Below are positions 7,151-61,574 of a stretch of DNA of 64,000 bases, piece by piece. Below the pieces are notes generated by a model, which did no database searches, was not told the DNA's origin, and saw only the letters and a program-made list of their open reading frames with translations. Within the stretch, counting starts at the first letter, position 1, and each line of letters opens with the position of its first letter. The position numbers were made by a program, and so were the translations under genes. This DNA is from Gracilinanus agilis (lineage: Eukaryota): NCBI RefSeq assembly GCF_016433145.1, contig NC_058134.1:292421770-292485769 (forward strand), in the 5' to 3' direction.

Positions 7151-8223
7151 CACATGAATACACCTCCTCAATATACTTTTACCCTCTTGCTCGTTTACCT
7201 ACTTCATTTCTTTTCAGTAAGATACAAGTACTTGCCCAAAGCCATAGTCCAGTCATGAGTTTCATCTTGCTAAGTCTCTGAGATAACTGTGAACTCAAAT
7301 TGACTCTTTGTACCAGGACGTATTATTTGCTACCCAGTATAATGCCTGAAGCATAAATCTCCTTTATAATGTATCCCTGACACAATCATCCATCCTCTAT
7401 TTGAAGGCTTCTAATGATGGAGTAATCACTACTCCTCAAAGGCATTCTTTTTCATCTTTGGATGCTTCCAGGCCTAGAAAACTCTTCTATTTAGTTATAA
7501 TCAACTTCTCTGATATTTCCATATAGTCATTCTAATTTTTTCTTTTGTGACCAAGCAGAATTAGACTACTCTGTCTTCTAAATGAGAGCCTTTCAGGTAA
7601 CTAAAGCCTGAAATCATACCTCATATACCACCACTCTCCTCCACTTAAAAAATCTCTGGTTCTGCATATAATCTCCTTCTTTCACAGCTTCCTGGCTGCC
7701 CTTCTCTGACTAGGCTCTGGTTTGTCATTGGCCTTTCTGAAGTGAATGCTTTGAATTGAACTCAGTACTCTAGATGGAGACCAGAGCTGAGCACAGCAGT
7801 TATCCCAACCCATTTGGATGGAGGGGATGATCATAATCTAGTCCACCGCTGGTGAACCTTTTAGAGATTGTGTGCTCAAACTGCGCCTTCCAGATGCCTG
7901 TGAGCCCCTGCATTACCCCAGAGAGCAGAGGGAGGAAGTGCTCATATTGGGTGGCTGGATCTCCATCCAGGATGGGGCTCCTGGAGAAGAGGGGAGGAGA
8001 GGATGTGGGGAGCAGTCCCTCTGGCACGAGGAAGCACGGTGCCATATCTTCACCAACATGGATTCTAGTCAATTAGTGGCAGGCTCTGAAATGAAATGTA
8101 AAAGTTTTAACTCTCAGCACATTGCTAGCCCCTGTGGATCCCACCATCTTCCAATCAAGTTCTTTCCTTCCTGAAACAAATTATAATTATGTTTAGACTT
8201 GGCCTTTGGCTTGCTCACTGCAG

Positions 8224-8329
8224 GTTTATTGCAAAACCATGTGCAGTTCATCTTGGCATCCAGGAGAAAGTTCCTCACCAGGCAGATCCCAATGCCATCC
8301 TTGAGAAGGTATACACATCCATCACCAAG
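8224..8329 (+). CDS. CERS5: CERS5 exon 2 (106 nt)
   Basis: tgcag|G TTT ATT GCA...ACC AAG|gtgagt; [35 protein letters not shown]; not in the ORF track. Confidence 0.95.
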
Positions 8330-11300
8330 GTGAGTAGCTAGAAAAGGGGAGAAATCATCTCTTAGGGGAAAGGTTTTGTCAGGGATGTGAGCAGGGGGAG
8401 ACAATATCTGACTGGTTTTTACCCTAAGAGAGGGGGTCCAGGCTTCCAGAGCTACAATAGAGAACAGGTCAGGAACTGATGGAGCTGCACTCCGGCCAGG
8501 TCCTACTTGGTTTCTATGAGCCAGTGTCTACCACATCCTGTTCTGAAAGGGGGAGATGGAGCATATATGACTCAATTGACTTTAGGCAGGAGATCGGATA
8601 AAAATGAGCCAAGAAGACCCTTCATTGTATAGGGCAGGGGATCTCTTCTGCATCTGCAGGGACTGGGGCAATGTTCTGATTATGGTCTTCCATCTGCAGT
8701 GTCCTGATGGGAAAAGGCTAGAGGGCCTCTCAAAGCAGCTGGATTGGGATGTCCGAAAAATCCAAGGCTGGTTTCGCCATCGGAGGAACCAAGACAAGCC
8801 CCCAACACTCACTAAATTCTGTGAGAGCATGTAGGTGTGCAGGCTGGGGAGTGAGGAGGTGGGTAGGGACAGGCTGCTCTCTCCCTTTGTATCAGGCACC
8901 TGTGGCTGGGGGTGAGTCAGCACATGGGCGCTAGTGCAGAATCCTTGGGTATTATCTGTAAGTACCTCTGAAGAGGGAGGACTGTGGAGGCTTGTCATTC
9001 TTGACATCTTGGCCCCCCTGAGTACTAATTAAGCCAGATGGACTTCTAGCCTGTTCTGTGTAGGAGGCAATTTCAAGGCTGTGCACAGCCATAAATACTG
9101 CTGGGTGGTGCCAACTCTGATATGACCTGTCATCTGGGAAGCAGGGAGTTGGGAGGCTGCTCCTTGGCCATTTGCATAAAAAGGGAAAATTAAGCATTTT
9201 TCTGGGCTCCACCCTTCTCTAGACCCACTCCCTCCCAGCACGGAGCCTATTCAGAAGACAGAAAAGTAAATGATACCCAGTGAAACAGATATCACAAACA
9301 GAGGCCAGAGAATAATTATAGAGCATGCACACACTAGCGGGTGTCCCTAGCCTAAATTCTTATTCTGGGATCTTATCAGTAGCCTGAAACTGGCCCGTCT
9401 AGACAGATACCATTATGACTTCCCCTTCCCTCCCTACCCCAAACTTCCCAGAGACTTTGTGGTAGTTGGGCTTCTGTCTAACCTCAGCTCTCTCCTTGCC
9501 TAGGTGGAGGTTCACTTTTTATTTATGTATATTCGCCTATGGAATCCGGTTTCTCTGGTCGGTGAGTCTGACCTGGCCACTTGTTGTTGCTCTATTAGCT
9601 CCGGTCCTGGGTGTCAGAGTTGAGAGCCTGCCTCTTTTTCTTGTTTTTTTTTTTTCCTTTTAATGGTCCCATCCCAGGCTTAAATGCTATGCAAATTGTA
9701 TCCTTCCTAAGAAAGCTGCCCTGAGGAGGTCTAAAGTAGGAGTTCTGAACTTTTGGGGAGGCCATAGATCCCTTGGGCAGTCCGGCAAATCTAGGGACCC
9801 CTTCTCAGAATTGTGTTCTTTAAATAATAGAAGAAAATGCTAAGTTTCGGTGAGAAGTTAGTGAAAATAAAGATGTCATTTTTCCTCATCTAACTTCTCA
9901 GACTCCCTGAAATCTAGACATTGATCCCAAGTTGGAACTCTCTCTCTAAAGGGTTCTGCGGAAGGGCAGCTTTTGACTTCTTAACTTGGCCTTTTTTTCA
10001 TGGTACTATTTGAATCAAATGAAGCCTTTCCCTCCTGCTATTTCCCAGTGTGCAGGTGGAATTTTATGGGCAGACTCCGTTGTTCCACCTACCTTGCCTT
10101 TCCCTCAAGCTACCTCCAAAGCATTTTATACCTGTGGAATAACAGTTTTATTGTCTTGAACAAATTGAATTGGAAGTTGGCTGCAGATTCATCTTTCCTT
10201 TCCTTCACCTCTCCCGTGACAAAAGAGTAGGAATGTTAGGTTAAAAGGATCTCAGGACCAAGCTGGATCCCTGCAGACTGACCGAGGTTCTCTGTTCTTT
10301 CCTCAGTCACCCTGGTTCTGGGACACCCGACAGTGCTGGCACAGATACCCCTACCAGGTAAGAATGAAGACTTCAACAAAAAGCCCCAAAATCTCAGAGA
10401 TCTCAGCTGCAGGGGCCCAGACGGGTCTATCCGGAGTGACATTGTTCTCCTTTTGCCCATGGTTGTAGCCTGGTGGAGAAACAGGGCAGAAAGGAAGTCT
10501 CTCCCTGGTGTTCCGAGCCCAAAAGAAGATTGTTGTCTAGGCCAAAGCTAAGGCCAATTCTTGGGGAGGAGTCACTCTGCATAGAGGCTTTTCTTTTTAA
10601 AAAGGAAAGGCAGCAGCTTTGATTCACTGATGTTCTAACTAGTTCTTATCTTTCCTAGCCTCTCACACCGGGCCTTTACTACTACTATATCATGGAACTG
10701 GCCTTTTATTGGTCTCTTATGTTTTCTCAATTTATAGACATTAAGCGAAAGGTAAGAACATTGTCTCCCAATGTGCTCCTATCTTTCTCCTCCCATTCTT
10801 CTCTAGTAAATACCTTTACTACCACTGATGGATCCTCTTTTCCCTGGTCAGGATCTCAAAAGAATAGGTGGTAGGTTTAATGGGGTTGTCATTTGGGGAA
10901 GAGAATGTTATATAGCATTGGGAAACAAGGATTTATGGATGTGCTCAGTTCTGTTTTAGACCCTGAGAGCAGATCTGAGCTAAGAGACAAGTACCTGGCA
11001 GAACTCAAATGAAATAACAAAGTACTGTTCAAACAAATGAGAGGACAAAGTAAGGATTTAGGACTGTTGGGATGTGAATTCTACCTGCAGTTGGTGATCC
11101 CTGTTTTGTGTATCCTCCTCTCGACACTTTGGTTCTAAGAATCACAAATCATTAGAGCCAGAAGAAATTTTAGAAATCATTTTGCTCAGATCCCTAATTT
11201 TGTCCAGATTGAAAAAAGAGCCATTGGGAGAACTTCATTTTATAGATAAGGAGACTGACTTTTTCACAGTCACACAGTGAATTAATGGCAGAGTTTAGAA

Positions 11301-13725
11301 CAATCTAGTTCCGACTCCCAAGTCCTGTGCACTTTTCATTGCATTAAGTGACTTGGCAGCCGAGACGGAACCAAAGATGTAAACTCTTAATCTCCAGAGG
11401 AGAAGAACCGGATCGAATTAATGTTCTTTGTGCCTTCCTGGCATAATGGATGTATGGCTCTGCTAACTTGGAACCAGACTCTCGAACATCTTTTTCTTTT
11501 TATTTGTTTTGTTTATTTATTTGTTTGTTTTTTGGACCCTTAACTTCTGTGTATTGGCTCATAGCCTCTTAGCTGCCTTCTTGAACATCTTTTTTCTGAA
11601 TAAAAAGTTAGAAATAGCCCTAATGGGAACAGGTTGAGATGGATAAACAAGTGGTTTTCAAAAGTAGAAACTTGATATTTGCCTCAGGGATCCTCCACCA
11701 GGCAGGAAGTCCTGGACTTTTTCCTTGGTACCAGTGATCCAAGTTCATCTCCTATCCCTTCTTCCTTATTGATCTACATTAGGGCTATATGTTCTTAGAA
11801 TATGGAAAATGCTTGGCAACTAGATCCCAAATATAGGCAGACAGAAGGTATTGGACTGGATGGCAGCTGAGAAATGGGTGAACCCAGAACTAGTTTAGCA
11901 TCCATAGCTTATGCATTCTGTCAATACGTTGGGCATAAAAAAATTAACTGTCTCCCTTTTAGGTCATACTAACAGATTTTAGGGCTGAGAGCTAGGGAGG
12001 GTAGCACCTTGCCATGGCCCAAATACAGAATGGAACTGCCTCAGGGAGGGATGGTCACAGAAGAAAATCCCGAGACATGGAATCCCTCTTAAGGCTTTGG
12101 TTGAGGGGCTCCCACCCCTCCGGACTTTGCCTCATCCATCCTTGCCTTCCTAGGATTTCCTAATCATGTTTGTGCATCATCTGGCCACCATTGGACTCAT
12201 CACCTTCTCCTATATCAACAACATGGTACGGGTGGGAACACTGGTCATGTGTCTGCATGACTCCTCAGACTTCCTGCTCGAGGTGAGACTCCTGGCTCCT
12301 CTCCTGTTGTGTTTCCTTTCCTGCTTCCCCCCATTCCTGATAGATCTGCTTCTCTCCCACTTCTTTCTTTTTTCCCTCCCCAGGCAGCCAAATTGGCCAA
12401 CTATGCCAAGTATCAGCGGCTTTGTGACACATTTTTTGTGGTATTCAGTGTCATTTTTGTGATCACTCGCCTTGGCATCTATCCATTCTGGTGAGTGCCT
12501 GGGCCCTGGGGCAGTAAACATTCTATTCAGTGGTATCCTGTTGGCAAGCTAAGGGTCAGAATCTGGGAACCCTACTCCTAAGAAACCTCTATCCCCTGCC
12601 AAGTCTGAGCGTGTGTACTATTTTAGGACTTTAGCTGCCTTAAGCAGTGTTGCTTAGGGTTGGGGGCACCCTGGCTTATCTGGTGCTCATAGCCACCCTG
12701 ACTTTTAGCTGACAGAAGCACCCGTTTGGGGAGCAATTTCATCAAGTAAAAAAAAAACTGGAAAAAAAATAGCCCCCGTTTCCCAAGGATTTTTGTTTGT
12801 TTGTTTTGATACTGCCTCCCATGATCTGACTCCTGGCTTTCCTTCTTCAGGGTCCTGAACACAACCTTGTTTGAGAGTTGGGAGATGATTGGACCTTATC
12901 CCTCCTGGTGGCTCTTCAATAGCCTTCTCCTAGTCCTACAGGTTCTCCACATCATCTGGTCCTATCTGATTGCTCGAATTGCCTGCAAGGCCCTGGTTCG
13001 AGGAAAGGTGAGGGCTAGACTGATTCCCTCCTCTCCTCCCTTTTCTATATATTTAGTGAACTTTTTTTACAGATGAGGCAGGGTGTCTGACTTTCTTCCA
13101 AATACCTCCAAATATTTCACTCTCCTTCCTCAAGGGGCCAAGGGGAAGAAAGAGCTGAAGTTCTCCAGATTTTCTGAGGTAGCCTTCCTTTCCCTCCCCT
13201 ACCTCGTGGAATGCATTATTTAGATGTCTTTCATGTCCCAGGGTGACTTACTGAAGTGTTTTGAAGGAAACCTGGAAGAGAATGGGTTTGAGAGATACCT
13301 TCTTGCTATCCTGGGCAAAGTTCCTGTGGCCCTTCTACACACCTGGCTCCTGCTTGACTAAAACAGAAAGGGAGGGAACTTCAAGGAGGCTCCTAACCGA
13401 GTTATTTAAGTTGTGGAGAGGTTAGGCTGAGCGTTACAATTTCCCAGCGCCAGGTTGACATAGAGGAGTGGGACAGAACACGAGAATGAGGTCTTCCATG
13501 AATGCCCCTCATGGCTGCTGCTAGTTCTAGAAGCTGCTCAGTGTCTGTCTTCCTTGCTGCAGCTGTCCAATACCTGTCTTCTCTCCGGCTTCTCTCTCCT
13601 AACCAGGTGACCTAGCCAGGAAGGACTAGACCTCGACTCTCTTCTCCACTCTTTTCTCACCTCCTTCCTTTTCTCTGTGCCAAGTGGGAGCTGGACAGTT
13701 TCATCTCTTGCATGTAAGTGTAACT

Positions 13726-13763
<38 letters not shown>

Positions 13764-14761
13764 TCGGTGGGCCTTGTCTGTGTGTCTTCCTTTTCCCTTT
13801 GTCCTTCTGTCTTCTCTGAGGGCTCATCCTCCCTGGGCACTCTGGGCACTGCTGAATAGAATGGAAGCCCCGCTGGGAGGCACACGCCTTCCTTTGCCTG
13901 TGCTGGGGCCAGCTTGCCCCCTGGTGGAGATTTCTTGATGATAAACATCCAAGCCAGATTCAGTTTTCTACAGATTATTACAGCTCATTCCCCAATTTAC
14001 AGTGACAAACCTGGATTTCCAAGAATCATGGGAGCTCATATAGAATGGAAAGGCTGACAAGAGTGCTTTCCTCCAGTGAGCCTGAGCATTGGAGCTCCAA
14101 TGACTTGCCCAAAGCTAGCTGGCTGAAGGGCCAGGAGTGGTTTAGGTCAGGCTCACTCTAAGTCCGTTTCTGTTATGCTCTGCATCATGGCAGACCTGGA
14201 AGCAGACCTGAGCCCAGGGATTGGGGAAGGTAAGCCGCTTCAAGCTGAGGCCAGAGAAAGCACAGTCTCCTGGATACGGCCTGGCTTGGGAGACCCAAAC
14301 AGCTAGCTTGGGGGGAATTCCGAGAGGAAGAGGGGGTTGAGCAGGGTCAAGTGCCTCCTGTTACTGCTGATAAGACCCATGTTTTCCAAGTGGTTAGGGC
14401 TTACCCCTGGCGTCTGGGAGCAGAAGAGGAAGCCTGGATCTTCCTCAAGACTTTCCTCTCTGGGAATTTAGCTGTTTTCTGGAAAGATGCAGAGACAGAT
14501 GGAAGTTGGACCTGAAATGAGGGACTAAGAAACCAGAGACTACTTGGCAGGGAGCATGGACTCTGGCAGCTCTGGTCTCACTATTATTCCTTGGCCCCTG
14601 CTACGTAGGTATCAAAGGATGACCGAAGTGACGTGGAAAGCAGCTCAGAAGAGGAAGATGTGCCCACTGGCAACAAGAAGCATCCATATGATGGCAATTC
14701 CAGTAATGGGGCCAACCAAATCAATGGTCACCTGAGAAACAATTGCTGGGCACAAGAGTAG
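8224..14761 (+). CDS. CERS5: Ceramide synthase 5, spliced CDS exons 2-10 (5'-partial): 8224-8329, 8700-8830, 9504-9561, 10307-10357, 10659-10751, 12154-12282, 12384-12490, 12851-13007, 14609-14761
   Basis: Joined translation FIAKPCA...[11 protein letters not shown] (Hox-like)...[11 protein letters not shown]...[11 protein letters not shown] (Lag1p/TLC)...[17 protein letters not shown]; all introns GT-AG with matching phases; synteny with COX14/GPD1. Confidence 0.97.
8700..8830 (+). CDS. CERS5: CERS5 exon 3 (131 nt), Hox-like domain
   Basis: ctgcag|TGT...AGC AT|gtaggt; [43 protein letters not shown]. Confidence 0.96.
9504..9561 (+). CDS. CERS5: CERS5 exon 4 (58 nt)
   Basis: cctag|G TGG AGG...TGG TCG|gtgagt; [19 protein letters not shown]. 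Confidence 0.95.
9737..9935 (+). mobile_element. Degenerate hAT-Charlie MITE (Charlie4z-like)
   Basis: ggagttctgaac...gaccccttctcagaa...gttggaactc resembles a remembered consensus. Confidence 0.45.
10307..10357 (+). CDS. CERS5: CERS5 exon 5 (51 nt)
   Basis: ctcag|TCA...TAC CAG|gtaaga; [17 protein letters not shown]. Confidence 0.95.
10659..10751 (+). CDS. CERS5: CERS5 exon 6 (93 nt)
   Basis: cctag|CCT...CGA AAG|gtaaga; [31 protein letters not shown]. Confidence 0.96.
11498..11560 (-). mobile_element. Short 3' fragment of SINE1 with T-rich tail
   Basis: acccttaacttctgtgtattggctc after a T-rich run; flanked by duplicated gaacatcttttt (11486, 11583). Confidence 0.5.
12154..12282 (+). CDS. CERS5: CERS5 exon 7 (129 nt), Lag1p motif
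   Basis: cctag|GAT...CTC GAG|gtgaga; [43 protein letters not shown]. Confidence 0.97.
12384..12490 (+). CDS. CERS5: CERS5 exon 8 (107 nt)
   Basis: cccag|GCA...TTC TG|gtgagt; [35 protein letters not shown]. Confidence 0.96.
12851..13007 (+). CDS. CERS5: CERS5 exon 9 (157 nt)
   Basis: ttcag|G GTC...GGA AAG|gtgagg; [52 protein letters not shown]. Confidence 0.96.
13607..13713 (+). other. CERS5: Candidate CERS5 cassette exon (107 nt) in intron 9 with in-frame TAG at 13613-13615
   Basis: Acceptor cttctctctcctaaccag|GTG after a long pyrimidine tract; donor CAT|gtaagt; reads [34 protein letters not shown] in the exon-9 frame. Confidence 0.65.
13731..13760 (+). repeat. (TGC)10 / CTG trinucleotide repeat
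   Basis: 30 nt of perfect tgc units starting 18 nt after the cassette-exon donor. Confidence 0.95.
14609..14761 (+). CDS. CERS5: CERS5 exon 10 coding part, ending at TAG
   Basis: cgtag|GTA TCA AAG GAT GAC; [50 protein letters not shown]. Confidence 0.96.
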   Translation, partial: VSKDDRSDVESSSEEEDVPTGNKKHPYDGNSSNGANQINGHLRNNCWAQE

Positions 14762-14969
14762 GGCAGGCTGACACGGAGGCCCGAGGACACGTGAACTTTC
14801 AGGGTCACTGGCAGCCTGCTCCCCGTGTCCTGTTTTCCCACTCATAGCCCCACTCTTGGGTAACAGACCCACCAGGCACTGAGGAAAAATCATGAAGCAA
14901 ACATTTTCACTTTTTTAAAAACTCTGCCATTTTGTATTTAATAACTTCCTCGTCCATAATGTTATTTGC

Positions 14970-15035
14970 CGTGTGCATATGTGTGTGCGTGTGTATGTGT
15001 GCGCGTGCTTTTTGTGTGTGTATATACATCATGTG
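14970..15035 (+). repeat. Imperfect (TG)n tract in CERS5 3'UTR
   Basis: gtgtgcatatgtgtgtgcgtgtgtatgtgtgcgcgtg...gtgtgtgtatat. Confidence 0.8.
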
Positions 15036-15476
15036 TGGTTTGGTGGGTTGGGGCACAATTCTGGACTGGACTTCTGAGCTCTGCCTTGCCCCTTCACCCC
15101 CAATTTCAAGTCTGGCTGCATTCCTAGATCATGTTGACTTGGCCTGGACAAGCACTCCCACCTTCATTGCTGCTTATGGCTCCGGCCGCTTGGACTTTCT
15201 GAATAGAGCAGCCAAGCTCAGCCCATTTTCTGCACTGAAGCTGATGACAGTTCTGTTGGGACAAAAGAACTCTAGATGGATGGCCAGAGTGTGCCGTGGC
15301 CTTTGGCTGGACTCTATGTCTACCAACCTCTTTCTTCCCCCTCCCCAGCAGCAACAGCACCTGCTGATATCCTGCTCATTACTCAATGGTACTTGGGGGT
15401 GGGCTGATGTTGGGGGAGAGCAGCAGCCACGGGGGCAGTTGTTACCATTTTATATCATTGTTTACTCTTTTCTGTG

Positions 15477-15519
15477 ATTAAAAGTGCTTCAGCCCTCCTC
15501 TGGTGTCCTGGCTATTAAA
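15477..15519 (+). terminator. Tandem ATTAAA polyadenylation signals of CERS5 (15477-15482, 15514-15519)
   Basis: Two ATTAAA hexamers about 0.72-0.76 kb after the stop codon. Confidence 0.6.
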
Positions 15520-15944
15520 GTGACTATCCCTAGCTAGCCTACTGGATCATAAAGATAATGGCCGAGTTGTGATTAAAACCAGGCCCTCTACATCCAAACC
15601 CATCACTCCTCTCTACTATTTCATACTATGGGTTGGGTTCCCCATCACAGGAGTTTTTATGAGCCTTCTCAACTTTAAAGGAATTCTTATTTCAAGATCA
15701 GGCTGGACTATATGCCCTCTGAAGCTTCAACTGTTGTGGTACCATATAAAAATACTATCACAAAAGAAGAGGAGCCAAAGTGAAGCTATCCAGATTGCTG
15801 AGGTTTATGGTCCTGAGTTGTTGAAAGCAAGCAATTTATCCTTCAGAACTATGTAATTCTTGCCTATTTTGAGGAAGGGGATTTTAATATGAAAGTCTGC
15901 TGAATCTCAAGGAATTATATCTTTTACATATAGGGTTATCAAGC

Positions 15945-28000: not shown

Positions 28001-29689
28001 TTTAATAAAAACTCTCCTAGGCACTGTTACAAAACACAATTCTATCCCAAAAAGGCAGAATTTTCTAAAAAATGGTTTAAGCTTTATGATGTGGCTTGAA
28101 ATATCCCACAAAACCCTGCCCAGTAACTGTAAACAGGCAAAATAACATGGAAGCAGTAATTAGTATGGGGCCAATTATAAGAAAATTCCTCATGCAAGGC
28201 CTAGGTCTTTGGTTGGGAGCCCATTCAGTTTCCTAATCACAAAGGACTAGGTTCAAACAATGCTCAATTTCCACAATACAGCCTTCCTTTAGAATCTCGG
28301 CAGAAGTAGCAAAAATCTAACTGAAAATTGCCCTGGGGTGTTTAACATATCATTAGCATTCTATTTACATGGGGTGTGCTCCCTCCAGTGGGCAGAGAGT
28401 GAATTATGGATAAAGCTACAAAGACCAAAGCCAACCACAAGTAAAAAGACATCAATTCCTAGGGAACTACTCAAACAAATGACCCCTTCCTAAGTAACTA
28501 ATCAAGATAAAAGGCATTCTTGAAAATGCCTTACCCAGCGCCTTAACTTACCTTACTTACTATTTCCTGCTTCTTTTACTGGCAACTCCATTTCTACATT
28601 CTCTCATAATAATGCTTTTTCCCTCAGCATGGAGTCCATTTGAGTTCTCAATTCTTTGGACAAGACCTAATTTCCTCTCACCTACGTCAGTTTTAGGTTT
28701 AAAAAAAAAAAAAAGACATAGGGAAATTATAACAGTAAGAAGACATAGATGTTAGTCGGGTTACAAGTAGACAGCCCAAGAACTCTACTAGTTTCCTAGA
28801 GATGTCAGAAGACATTGAGAAAGGTCTCCAGGAAATACAGTGATAAGTTTCTGAGAGAAAGTCACAAAGGATGAGGAAGCATGGGCTGACACCTACATCT
28901 TTGTGAGCTCCCAAGAGGTTTTTTTGCTTGTTTCTTTTATTGGTTTTGCCTTTCTTTATATTCCTAGCAATTTATATAGGGCTACTAGGCATAGAATATA
29001 CCTCACTAAATGCTAATTAATTGCTATAAATGGAAGATCTTTTTCAGTATTTCAGAATAAGTTCTATAAGATAGATGGATCCAAATAGAGGTGGAAGTTC
29101 TGAGGGGATGAGTTCAATTCCCATTTGGAAGGGCATTCCAGAAGGTTTTATGTAAGAACTAACACTGAACTATGAAAGAAGAATAAGATTTTGACCGACC
29201 TCCCTGGTTTCCTTTAGGTTCCACCTAAAATTCCACCTTCTGCAGGAAGTCTTCTCTAACTCTAATTCTAGTGCTGTCTCTCTTTTAATGATCGTGTTTG
29301 TAGCTTGCTTTGTAAGTATTTGTTTGCATCCTCTTGCCAGTTAGAATGTGAGCCTTGAAACCAAGGTCTGTCCTTTCCCCCCAAGCTTAGCACAGTGCCT
29401 GTACCATAGCAGACGCTCAATAAATGTTTGCTGAACTGACTGTGTAAATTAGGAGAGGGAAAGAGAGGATAGCTAGAGCGGGATCAAAACGAAGGGGTCA
29501 AGCTGTTGGGGGAAGGTCTACAAGGGTACCACGTGCGGGTGAAGCATTAGGCCTAGAAGGAGGGACTGATGATTATTCAGTGGCCCCAAGGCTGCTCAAG
29601 ATGGGCCTCGAAGCAGAATAGTTGGGATGCAGCGATGGCACAAGAACCTAGGATAGCGAGGTAGTCTCTTCCCCACAGGCCGATGCAGT

Positions 29690-51289: not shown

Positions 51290-51870
51290 CATCTTAATAC
51301 CCCGCTCGCGCCCCCCCCCCCNNNNNNNNNNNNNNNNNNNNNNNNNNNNNNNNNNNNNNNNNNNNNNNNNNNNNNNNNNNNNNNNNNNNNNNNNNNNNNN
51401 NNNNNNNNNNNNNNNNNNNNNNNNNNNNNNNNNNNNNNNNNNNNNNNNNNNNNNNNNNNNNNNNNNNNNNNNNNNNNNNNNNNNNNNNNNNNNNNNNNNN
51501 NNNNNNNNNNNNNNNNNNNNNNNNNNNNNNNNNNNNNNNNNNNNNNNNNNNNNNNNNNNNNNNNNNNNNNNNNNNNNNNNNNNCCGGAACCGGAACTCCC
51601 CCCTTTCTCGGCCCCTCTCCCTCGCCCCCCGCCCCCGCCCCCCTCGGCCCGATCTCCGGGGCTTGCCCGGGCCCGGGACGGAGAGGTTTCGCGAGGCCGC
51701 GAGCTAGAGGGGGCGGCGGGAAGAGCGAGGCGGGCGGCCCCCTCCCTCTAGCCTCCTAGCCGCTGGAGGAGAAACCAGCGAGAAGAGGCGGCGGGGGAGA
51801 GAGGCCCCGAACTGCGCCCCCTGCAGGCCGGAGGGCGCCCGTGGCTGGAGCCGTCCAGGCATGAATGCCG
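51290..51870 (-). promoter_or_regulatory. CpG island: SMARCD1 promoter, 5'UTR and exon 1 region (partly gapped)
   Basis: Very high GC and CpG on both sides of the gap; GC boxes and ccggaa repeats. Confidence 0.8.
51322..51583. other. Assembly gap (262 N), expected to contain SMARCD1 coding exon 1
   Basis: Run of N; exon 1 coding sequence and its donor are absent from the flanks. Confidence 0.9.
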
Positions 51871-54911: not shown

Positions 54912-60155
<5,244 letters not shown>

Positions 60156-61376: not shown

Positions 61377-61574
61377 NNNNNNNNNNNNNNNNNNNNNNNN
61401 NNNNNNNNNNNNNNNNNNNNNNNNNNNNNNNNNNNNNNNNNNNNNNNNNNNNNNNNNNNNNNNNNNNNNNNNNNNNNNNNNNNNNNNNNNNNNNNNNNNN
61501 NNNNNNNNNNNNNNNNNNNNNNNNNNNNNNNNNNNNNNNNNNNNNNNNNNNNNNNNNNNNNNNNNNNNNNNNNN
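61377..61574. other. Assembly gap (198 N) in ASIC1 intron 3
   Basis: Run of N. Confidence 0.9.

Follow-up and report, generated by a model that had tools for sequence, protein, structure and literature searches.

The window, that is, the whole stretch of 64,000 nt (64 kb) of Gracilinanus agilis DNA that was analysed, carries on its plus strand the 3' part of CERS5. The CERS5 protein annotated in this species, XP_044534150.1 (P0155), is encoded at window positions 8189-14761 and contains the normal C-terminal tail only. Window positions 7189-15761, compared outside 13684-13725, are identical to record CM028239.1 of assembly GCA_016433145.1 (L008). The initial annotation had assigned the gene to CERS5, and this assignment was borne out. 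The intron between these two exons is 1.6 kb long and contains the unit described here. The features of the region are the following:

12851-13007, plus strand: CERS5 exon 9, which is 157 nt long and codes for the last transmembrane helix; it ends with ...ALVRGK in phase 0 and is followed by gt at 13008
13553-13606, plus strand: end of the upstream intron, with pyrimidine tract and acceptor (...ctcctaaccag); the local alignment with the gecko intron reaches back to 13553
13607-13713, plus strand: putative CERS5 cassette exon, 107 nt, with AG acceptor and GT donor, unannotated in this species
13613-13615, plus strand: in-frame TAG, third codon of the cassette, 98 nt upstream of the 13713/14609 junction
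13714-13725, plus strand: donor (gtaagtgta...), whose first intron bases are kept in bird and gecko
13727-13761, plus strand: (CTG)11 microsatellite, beginning 13 nt past the cassette donor, specific to opossums
14609-14761, plus strand: coding part of the last exon, encoding a 50-aa cytosolic tail identical to that of XP_044534150.1 (P0155)

CERS5 as modelled in Gracilinanus is 339 residues long, as compared to 393 in Monodelphis (P0244). Since it is shorter, its first coding exon or exons are probably missing and are expected upstream of 8189, in or before the window. Three runs of N are present in the window, at 51322-51583, 59402-59602 and 61377-61574.

The unit between exon 9 and the last exon had been described in the initial annotation as a 107-nt exon-like sequence with near-consensus splice sites, opening with VT and a TAG that is its sole stop and that precedes the last junction by 98 nt. 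Our coordinates and translation agree with this description. The acceptor AG is at 13605-06 and the donor GT at 13714-15, and the exon-9 frame continues through the cassette as VT-stop-PGRT...ISC, with the TAG as the only stop in that frame. A simple splice-site weight matrix, whose values are approximate, gave the cassette acceptor 9.45 bits, as compared to 14.5 and 7.0 bits for the acceptors of exon 9 and of the last exon, respectively; the cassette donor scored 9.07 bits, as compared to 11.0 bits for that of exon 9. When AG..GT pairs at a spacing of 50-250 nt were counted along the 64-kb window, 14 pairs on the plus strand and 10 on the minus strand scored at least as high as the cassette. 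About half of these pairs coincide with coding exons and about half do not, which corresponds to roughly 0.1 chance pair expected per 1.6-kb intron. Splice-site scores alone are therefore weak evidence for an exon, because comparable pairs arise by chance.

The composition of the unit is more distinctive. The exon and its acceptor had been noted as very CU-rich, and in fact the density of PTB-type motifs in segment 13560-13683 falls in the top 0.05% of window segments of the same size. The (CTG)11 microsatellite past the donor has a shorter counterpart at the same place in Monodelphis (L009, about 28153-28175) and no counterpart in Limosa or gecko. CUG repeats hold YGCY motifs, the kind bound by MBNL proteins, and for this reason one might speculate that (CTG)11 serves as an opossum-specific downstream splicing enhancer.

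A PTBP1-regulated cassette at this position in human CERS5 had been mentioned in the initial annotation, and the literature confirms it. The event, named 'CERS5-E10', is a skipped exon whose length is not a multiple of three; its inclusion shifts the frame to an alternative stop in the last exon, and in this way replaces the cytosolic tail that bears four phospho-serines (PMC11142752). Inclusion of E10 is favoured in normal brain, knockdown of PTBP1 modulates E10 splicing with a drop in C16-ceramide, and in CERS5-knockout cells C16-ceramide is restored by the skipped isoform only (PMC11142752). In hg19 coordinates, the exon at chr12:50528329-50528485 (157 nt) is followed by E10 at 50526745-50526847 (103 nt) and then by the last exon (PMC11142752, supplement). 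The exon upstream of E10 thus has the same length as opossum exon 9. The switch has been observed in mouse as well, where an alternative Cers5 exon is retained in Ptbp1-knockout spermatogonia and where the forward primer used for RT-PCR encodes PYPSWWLF, a sequence of exon 9 (PMC7593632).

The opossum unit was compared with bird, gecko, mouse and Monodelphis sequences. In the last intron of opossum CERS5, the cassette is the sole island that aligns to the corresponding intron of Limosa and gecko, with local scores of 42 and 41, whereas shuffled controls gave at most 20 and other parts of the intron 14-15. The genomic copies found in these species are the following:

L002:10671-10772, Limosa: ...cccag, GTGACCTAG ... 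GCAT, gtaagtgt, with both splice sites
L007:21741-21835, Gekko kuhli: ...aatcag, GTGACCTAG ... GTAT, gtaagtgt, with both splice sites
L009:28034-28140, Monodelphis domestica: 107 nt, with both splice sites and GTGACCTAG present

Over the 5' 77 nt of the cassette (13607-13683), identity amounts to 78% with both birds, 73% with mouse and 72% with gecko. The final 30 nt, compared by eye, are the same in Monodelphis and show about four differences from Limosa. Between Gracilinanus and Monodelphis, the identity of the 5' 77 nt is 98.7%, as compared to 98.1% for exon 9, the constitutive exon upstream of the cassette event, 88.9% for the coding part of the last exon, and 84-86% (gaps ignored) or 67-70% (gaps counted) for the flanking introns. 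The sequence beyond codon 3 is non-coding in opossum, and yet it is conserved at this level between the two opossums and can be aligned to sauropsids. Such conservation of a non-coding part points to a constraint acting at the RNA level, as for a regulated exon. If the distance between exon 9 and the last exon is set to 1, the cassette is located at 0.37 in opossum and at 0.38 in human. Judged by position and sequence, the opossum unit is the orthologue of human CERS5 'E10', the human exon entering the comparison through its coordinates and length only. The sampling was thin, as the genomic loci compared came only from two didelphid marsupials, one bird and one gecko. No Rfam match was obtained for 13008-13683. 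Named primates are found among the protein matches (P0046, Pan troglodytes; P0054, Saguinus oedipus), and two further matches, P0013 and P0014, we take to be human or primate CERS5.

The exon is spliced into RNA in other species. A word search with a stretch of exon 9 led to P0030, an open reading frame ending with ...ALVRGKVT. The contig L001, from one sequencing run, joins exons 7, 8 and 9 to a 103-nt cassette (L001:719-821) and then to the last exon; this cassette starts with GTGACCTAGCCAG, exactly as in opossum. L001 can be attributed to a bird, because its canonical tail differs little from the one found in CERS5 of Limosa lapponica (P0090). A second bird open reading frame, P0242, likewise ends with ...RGKVT. 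Among the matches listed, no opossum protein of 110-350 aa ending with ...RGKVT was found, and the NCBI annotation of both opossums lacks the cassette isoform and contains the canonical product only.

In placental mammals the orthologous exon is translated further. Fourteen mouse-like RNA contigs contain a 107-nt cassette (L003:423-529) that lacks the TAG and whose frame stays open until it meets a stop in the last exon. In annotated placental isoforms, ...RGK is followed by VTY in two bats, camel and rat, by VTC in ground squirrel and by VLS in mouse. The comparison across therians called for by the initial annotation finds the exon in mouse RNA and in placental isoforms, with a sense codon at position 3, and in Monodelphis with the TAG. 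In rat, isoform X3 (P0184) has an in-frame insert of 36 residues followed by the normal tail, so that loss of the tail is not universal in placentals; these two murid rodents differ in the outcome of inclusion, which is an in-frame insert in rat and a 107-nt frameshift in mouse.

Other alternative ends are seen at the same junction. Isoform X2 of the owl Athene cunicularia (P0241) continues past ...RGK with a different tail (DQLKAQQV...) that bears no relation to the cassette, and birds may have one more alternative 3' exon or site within the last CERS5 intron. In teleosts, the CERS5 isoforms P0221 (Conger), P0217 (Oncorhynchus keta), P0080 (Hucho) and P0213 (Astyanax) carry Ser/Leu/Phe-rich alternative tails after ...RGK, and the end of the Conger tail resembles a frameshifted reading of the normal tail. 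These teleost tails suggest that a CU-rich cassette at the junction between exon 9 and the last exon may predate amniotes.

The third codon of the cassette is TAG in gecko, in Limosa, in a second bird and in both opossums. A base-call error, which had been raised as a possible source of the TAG, does not account for it, because the same GTGACCTAG is present in the independent Monodelphis assembly and in the bird and gecko genomes. Since the TAG is common to sauropsids and opossums, parsimony traces the stop back to the ancestors of amniotes and of mammals and puts its loss on the placental side. The stop therefore looks like the older state and the translated placental tail like the derived one; the exon itself looks at least as old as the amniote ancestor, with GTG ACC TAG as its ancestral opening. 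The frame that follows the stop shows no such constancy. The length of the cassette is 107 nt in opossum, 103 nt in the bird transcript, 102 nt in Limosa, 95 nt in gecko, 107 nt in mouse and 103 nt in human, and the tails of placental isoforms imply a cassette of about 109 nt in bats and about 108 nt in rat. Every residue modulo 3 is thus represented, and the downstream frame is unconserved. In both birds and in gecko, moreover, a second in-frame stop is found past the TAG. The distance from the TAG to the last junction is 86-94 nt in sauropsids.

Taken together, these results make it likely that 13607-13713 is the opossum orthologue of the PTBP1-repressed CERS5 cassette, that it carries an ancestral stop at codon 3, and that its inclusion removes the regulatory tail. 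Control by PTBP1 would apply to the opossum exon on account of its motif density and of its homology to the human and mouse exons, and on the same grounds opossum cells with little PTBP1 would be expected to include the cassette in CERS5 mRNA. Inclusion would end the frame after two extra residues (...RGKVT), so that opossums could not produce a tail of the placental type in this way, as had been proposed at the outset. The 50-residue tail that would be dropped contains the DxRSDxE motif and a serine cluster phosphorylated by CK2. Phosphorylation of C-terminal serines by this kinase raises the activity of ceramide synthases (reference 37 in PMC11142752).

What would become of the inclusion mRNA depends on its surveillance. 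EJC-dependent NMD is elicited by a stop whose distance to the last junction exceeds 50-55 nt, and with its stop 98 nt before that junction the opossum inclusion mRNA is a predicted NMD substrate. The outcome would be decay of the mRNA and/or an enzyme of about 345 residues in which the catalytic core is intact and the regulatory tail is gone; by decay or truncation alike, tail-bearing CERS5 would fall in cells with low PTBP1. The bird inclusion mRNA was assembled as a contig, which suggests that it is not rare. This is hard to reconcile with efficient NMD, and we are slightly in favour of the view that some truncated protein is made. In placentals, the TAG would have changed to a sense codon, giving replacement tails that now vary among lineages. 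This variability suggests that the selected effect is the loss of the normal tail rather than the new peptide. A bolder reading, which we put forward tentatively and with some doubt, is that the main and original function of the exon in amniotes is to provide a stable tail-less CERS5 (...RGKVT) that cannot be activated by CK2 in cells with low PTBP1, such as neurons, the mRNA largely escaping NMD. If so, the placental tails would be neutral by-products of the loss of the ancestral stop, and the phenotype of the human inclusion isoform would be due to tail loss alone.

The frequency of equally scoring AG..GT pairs in the window (14 and 10 on the two strands, about half of them non-coding) leaves room for a chance pseudoexon, made of splice-site look-alikes in a CU-rich intron and never used. 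The comparison between species makes this extremely improbable, as opossum shares the unit with bird and gecko and the remaining intron cannot be aligned, its 98.7% identity between the two opossums stands against 84-86% for the intron, and RNA of bird and mouse contains the homologous exon in spliced form. The marsupial element might instead be kept for another role, for example as a decoy exon or as an intronic regulator of splicing or retention that binds PTBP1 and U1/U2, and rarely or never enter the mature mRNA. Conservation extends to the splice regions on both flanks, as a decoy would likewise require, and no marsupial isoform with the exon is found in the annotation or among the matches listed. 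However, it is a true cassette exon wherever RNA is visible (two bird runs, mouse, annotated placental isoforms), and in opossum neither splice site is disrupted, with scores comparable to those of real sites; we consider a role of this other kind unlikely.

Two further readings concern the stop. The initial annotation had considered the opossum exon as possibly a lost alternative C-terminus, that is, an ancestral coding cassette hit by a nonsense mutation in opossums. This would agree with the fact that placentals translate through the exon and that the opossum frame past the TAG is open to the end of the exon. The open frame is not telling, because it is what the CU-rich composition predicts, whereas the identical position of the TAG in both opossums, in Limosa and a second bird and in gecko, together with a second stop in the sauropsid frames and a frame that is not conserved across the different lengths, renders a marsupial-specific loss scarcely credible. 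The long tail might instead be made by bypassing the stop, either through UAG readthrough, as had also been envisaged, or through one of two acceptors lying further downstream, by 9 nt (AG at 13614-15) or by 13 nt (AG at 13618-19). An exon starting at 13620 would be 94 nt long, in the same frame class as the 103-nt human exon, and would read a placental-like peptide up to a stop at 14620-22 in the last exon. However, the two downstream acceptors score -1.2 and -1.5 bits with respect to 9.45 bits of the upstream one, which is the acceptor used in all transcripts and isoforms observed in other species (starting with GTGACC, GTGCTC or VT). Readthrough restoring a long form finds no favour in the unconserved frames past the TAG, which in both birds and gecko contain the second stop and whose length modulo 3 varies; UAG-CCA is not known to be a readthrough context. 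A bypass of the stop is thus highly unlikely, and the preferred reading remains that of an ancestral cassette whose inclusion removes the tail.

The product of CERS5 is C16-ceramide, and the enzyme becomes more active when its C-terminal tail is phosphorylated; for the human cassette, a link to glioma growth and neuronal differentiation has already been established. If the exon is at least as old as amniotes, carried an immediate stop at birth, and encodes a peptide whose frame differs among placentals, the human switch could be read as a simple removal of the tail, the exon would represent a clean case of a stop-carrying exon turned coding, and opossum and chicken would be natural models in which inclusion yields the tail-less form only and in which the effect of the switch can be studied. 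A functional exon would then be missing from the annotations of both opossums.

The closest known system is E10 of human and mouse CERS5. The opossum cassette lies in the same intron, after a 157-nt exon ending with ...RGK, and is homologous and CU-rich, with a length of 107 nt in opossum and mouse and of 103 nt in human; in each case inclusion removes, or would remove, the C-terminal tail with its phospho-serines. The difference lies in what follows, as in human and mouse the frameshifted tail ends in the last exon, whereas in opossum, birds and gecko the codon-3 TAG would give ...RGKVT and a stop.

An alternative exon at the same junction (...GK / VSKDD...) is also present in CERS6, the closest paralogue, in the form of a 24-nt microexon (AGKWNPLH). 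Many annotated CERS6 isoforms from shark to bat (P0192, P0206, P0208, P0210, P0232 and others) have an 8-residue insert, [AVST]GKWNPLH, exactly between ...GK and VSKDD, and it can be deduced that the homologous intron of the paralogue contains an alternative microexon of its own. Unlike the CERS5 cassette, the CERS6 microexon is in frame, adds 8 residues and keeps the tail, and no similarity between the two sequences was seen.

With the poison exons of SR-protein genes, the opossum cassette shares an in-frame stop that is separated from the last junction by over 55 nt, a conservation far above that of the intron and as high as that of coding exons, and a probable control by an RNA-binding protein. 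The host gene is different, because CERS5 encodes an enzyme and not a splicing factor, and hence no autoregulatory loop is obvious. The stop falls just where the catalytic core ends, which makes a stable tail-less enzyme a plausible product of the CERS5 exon.
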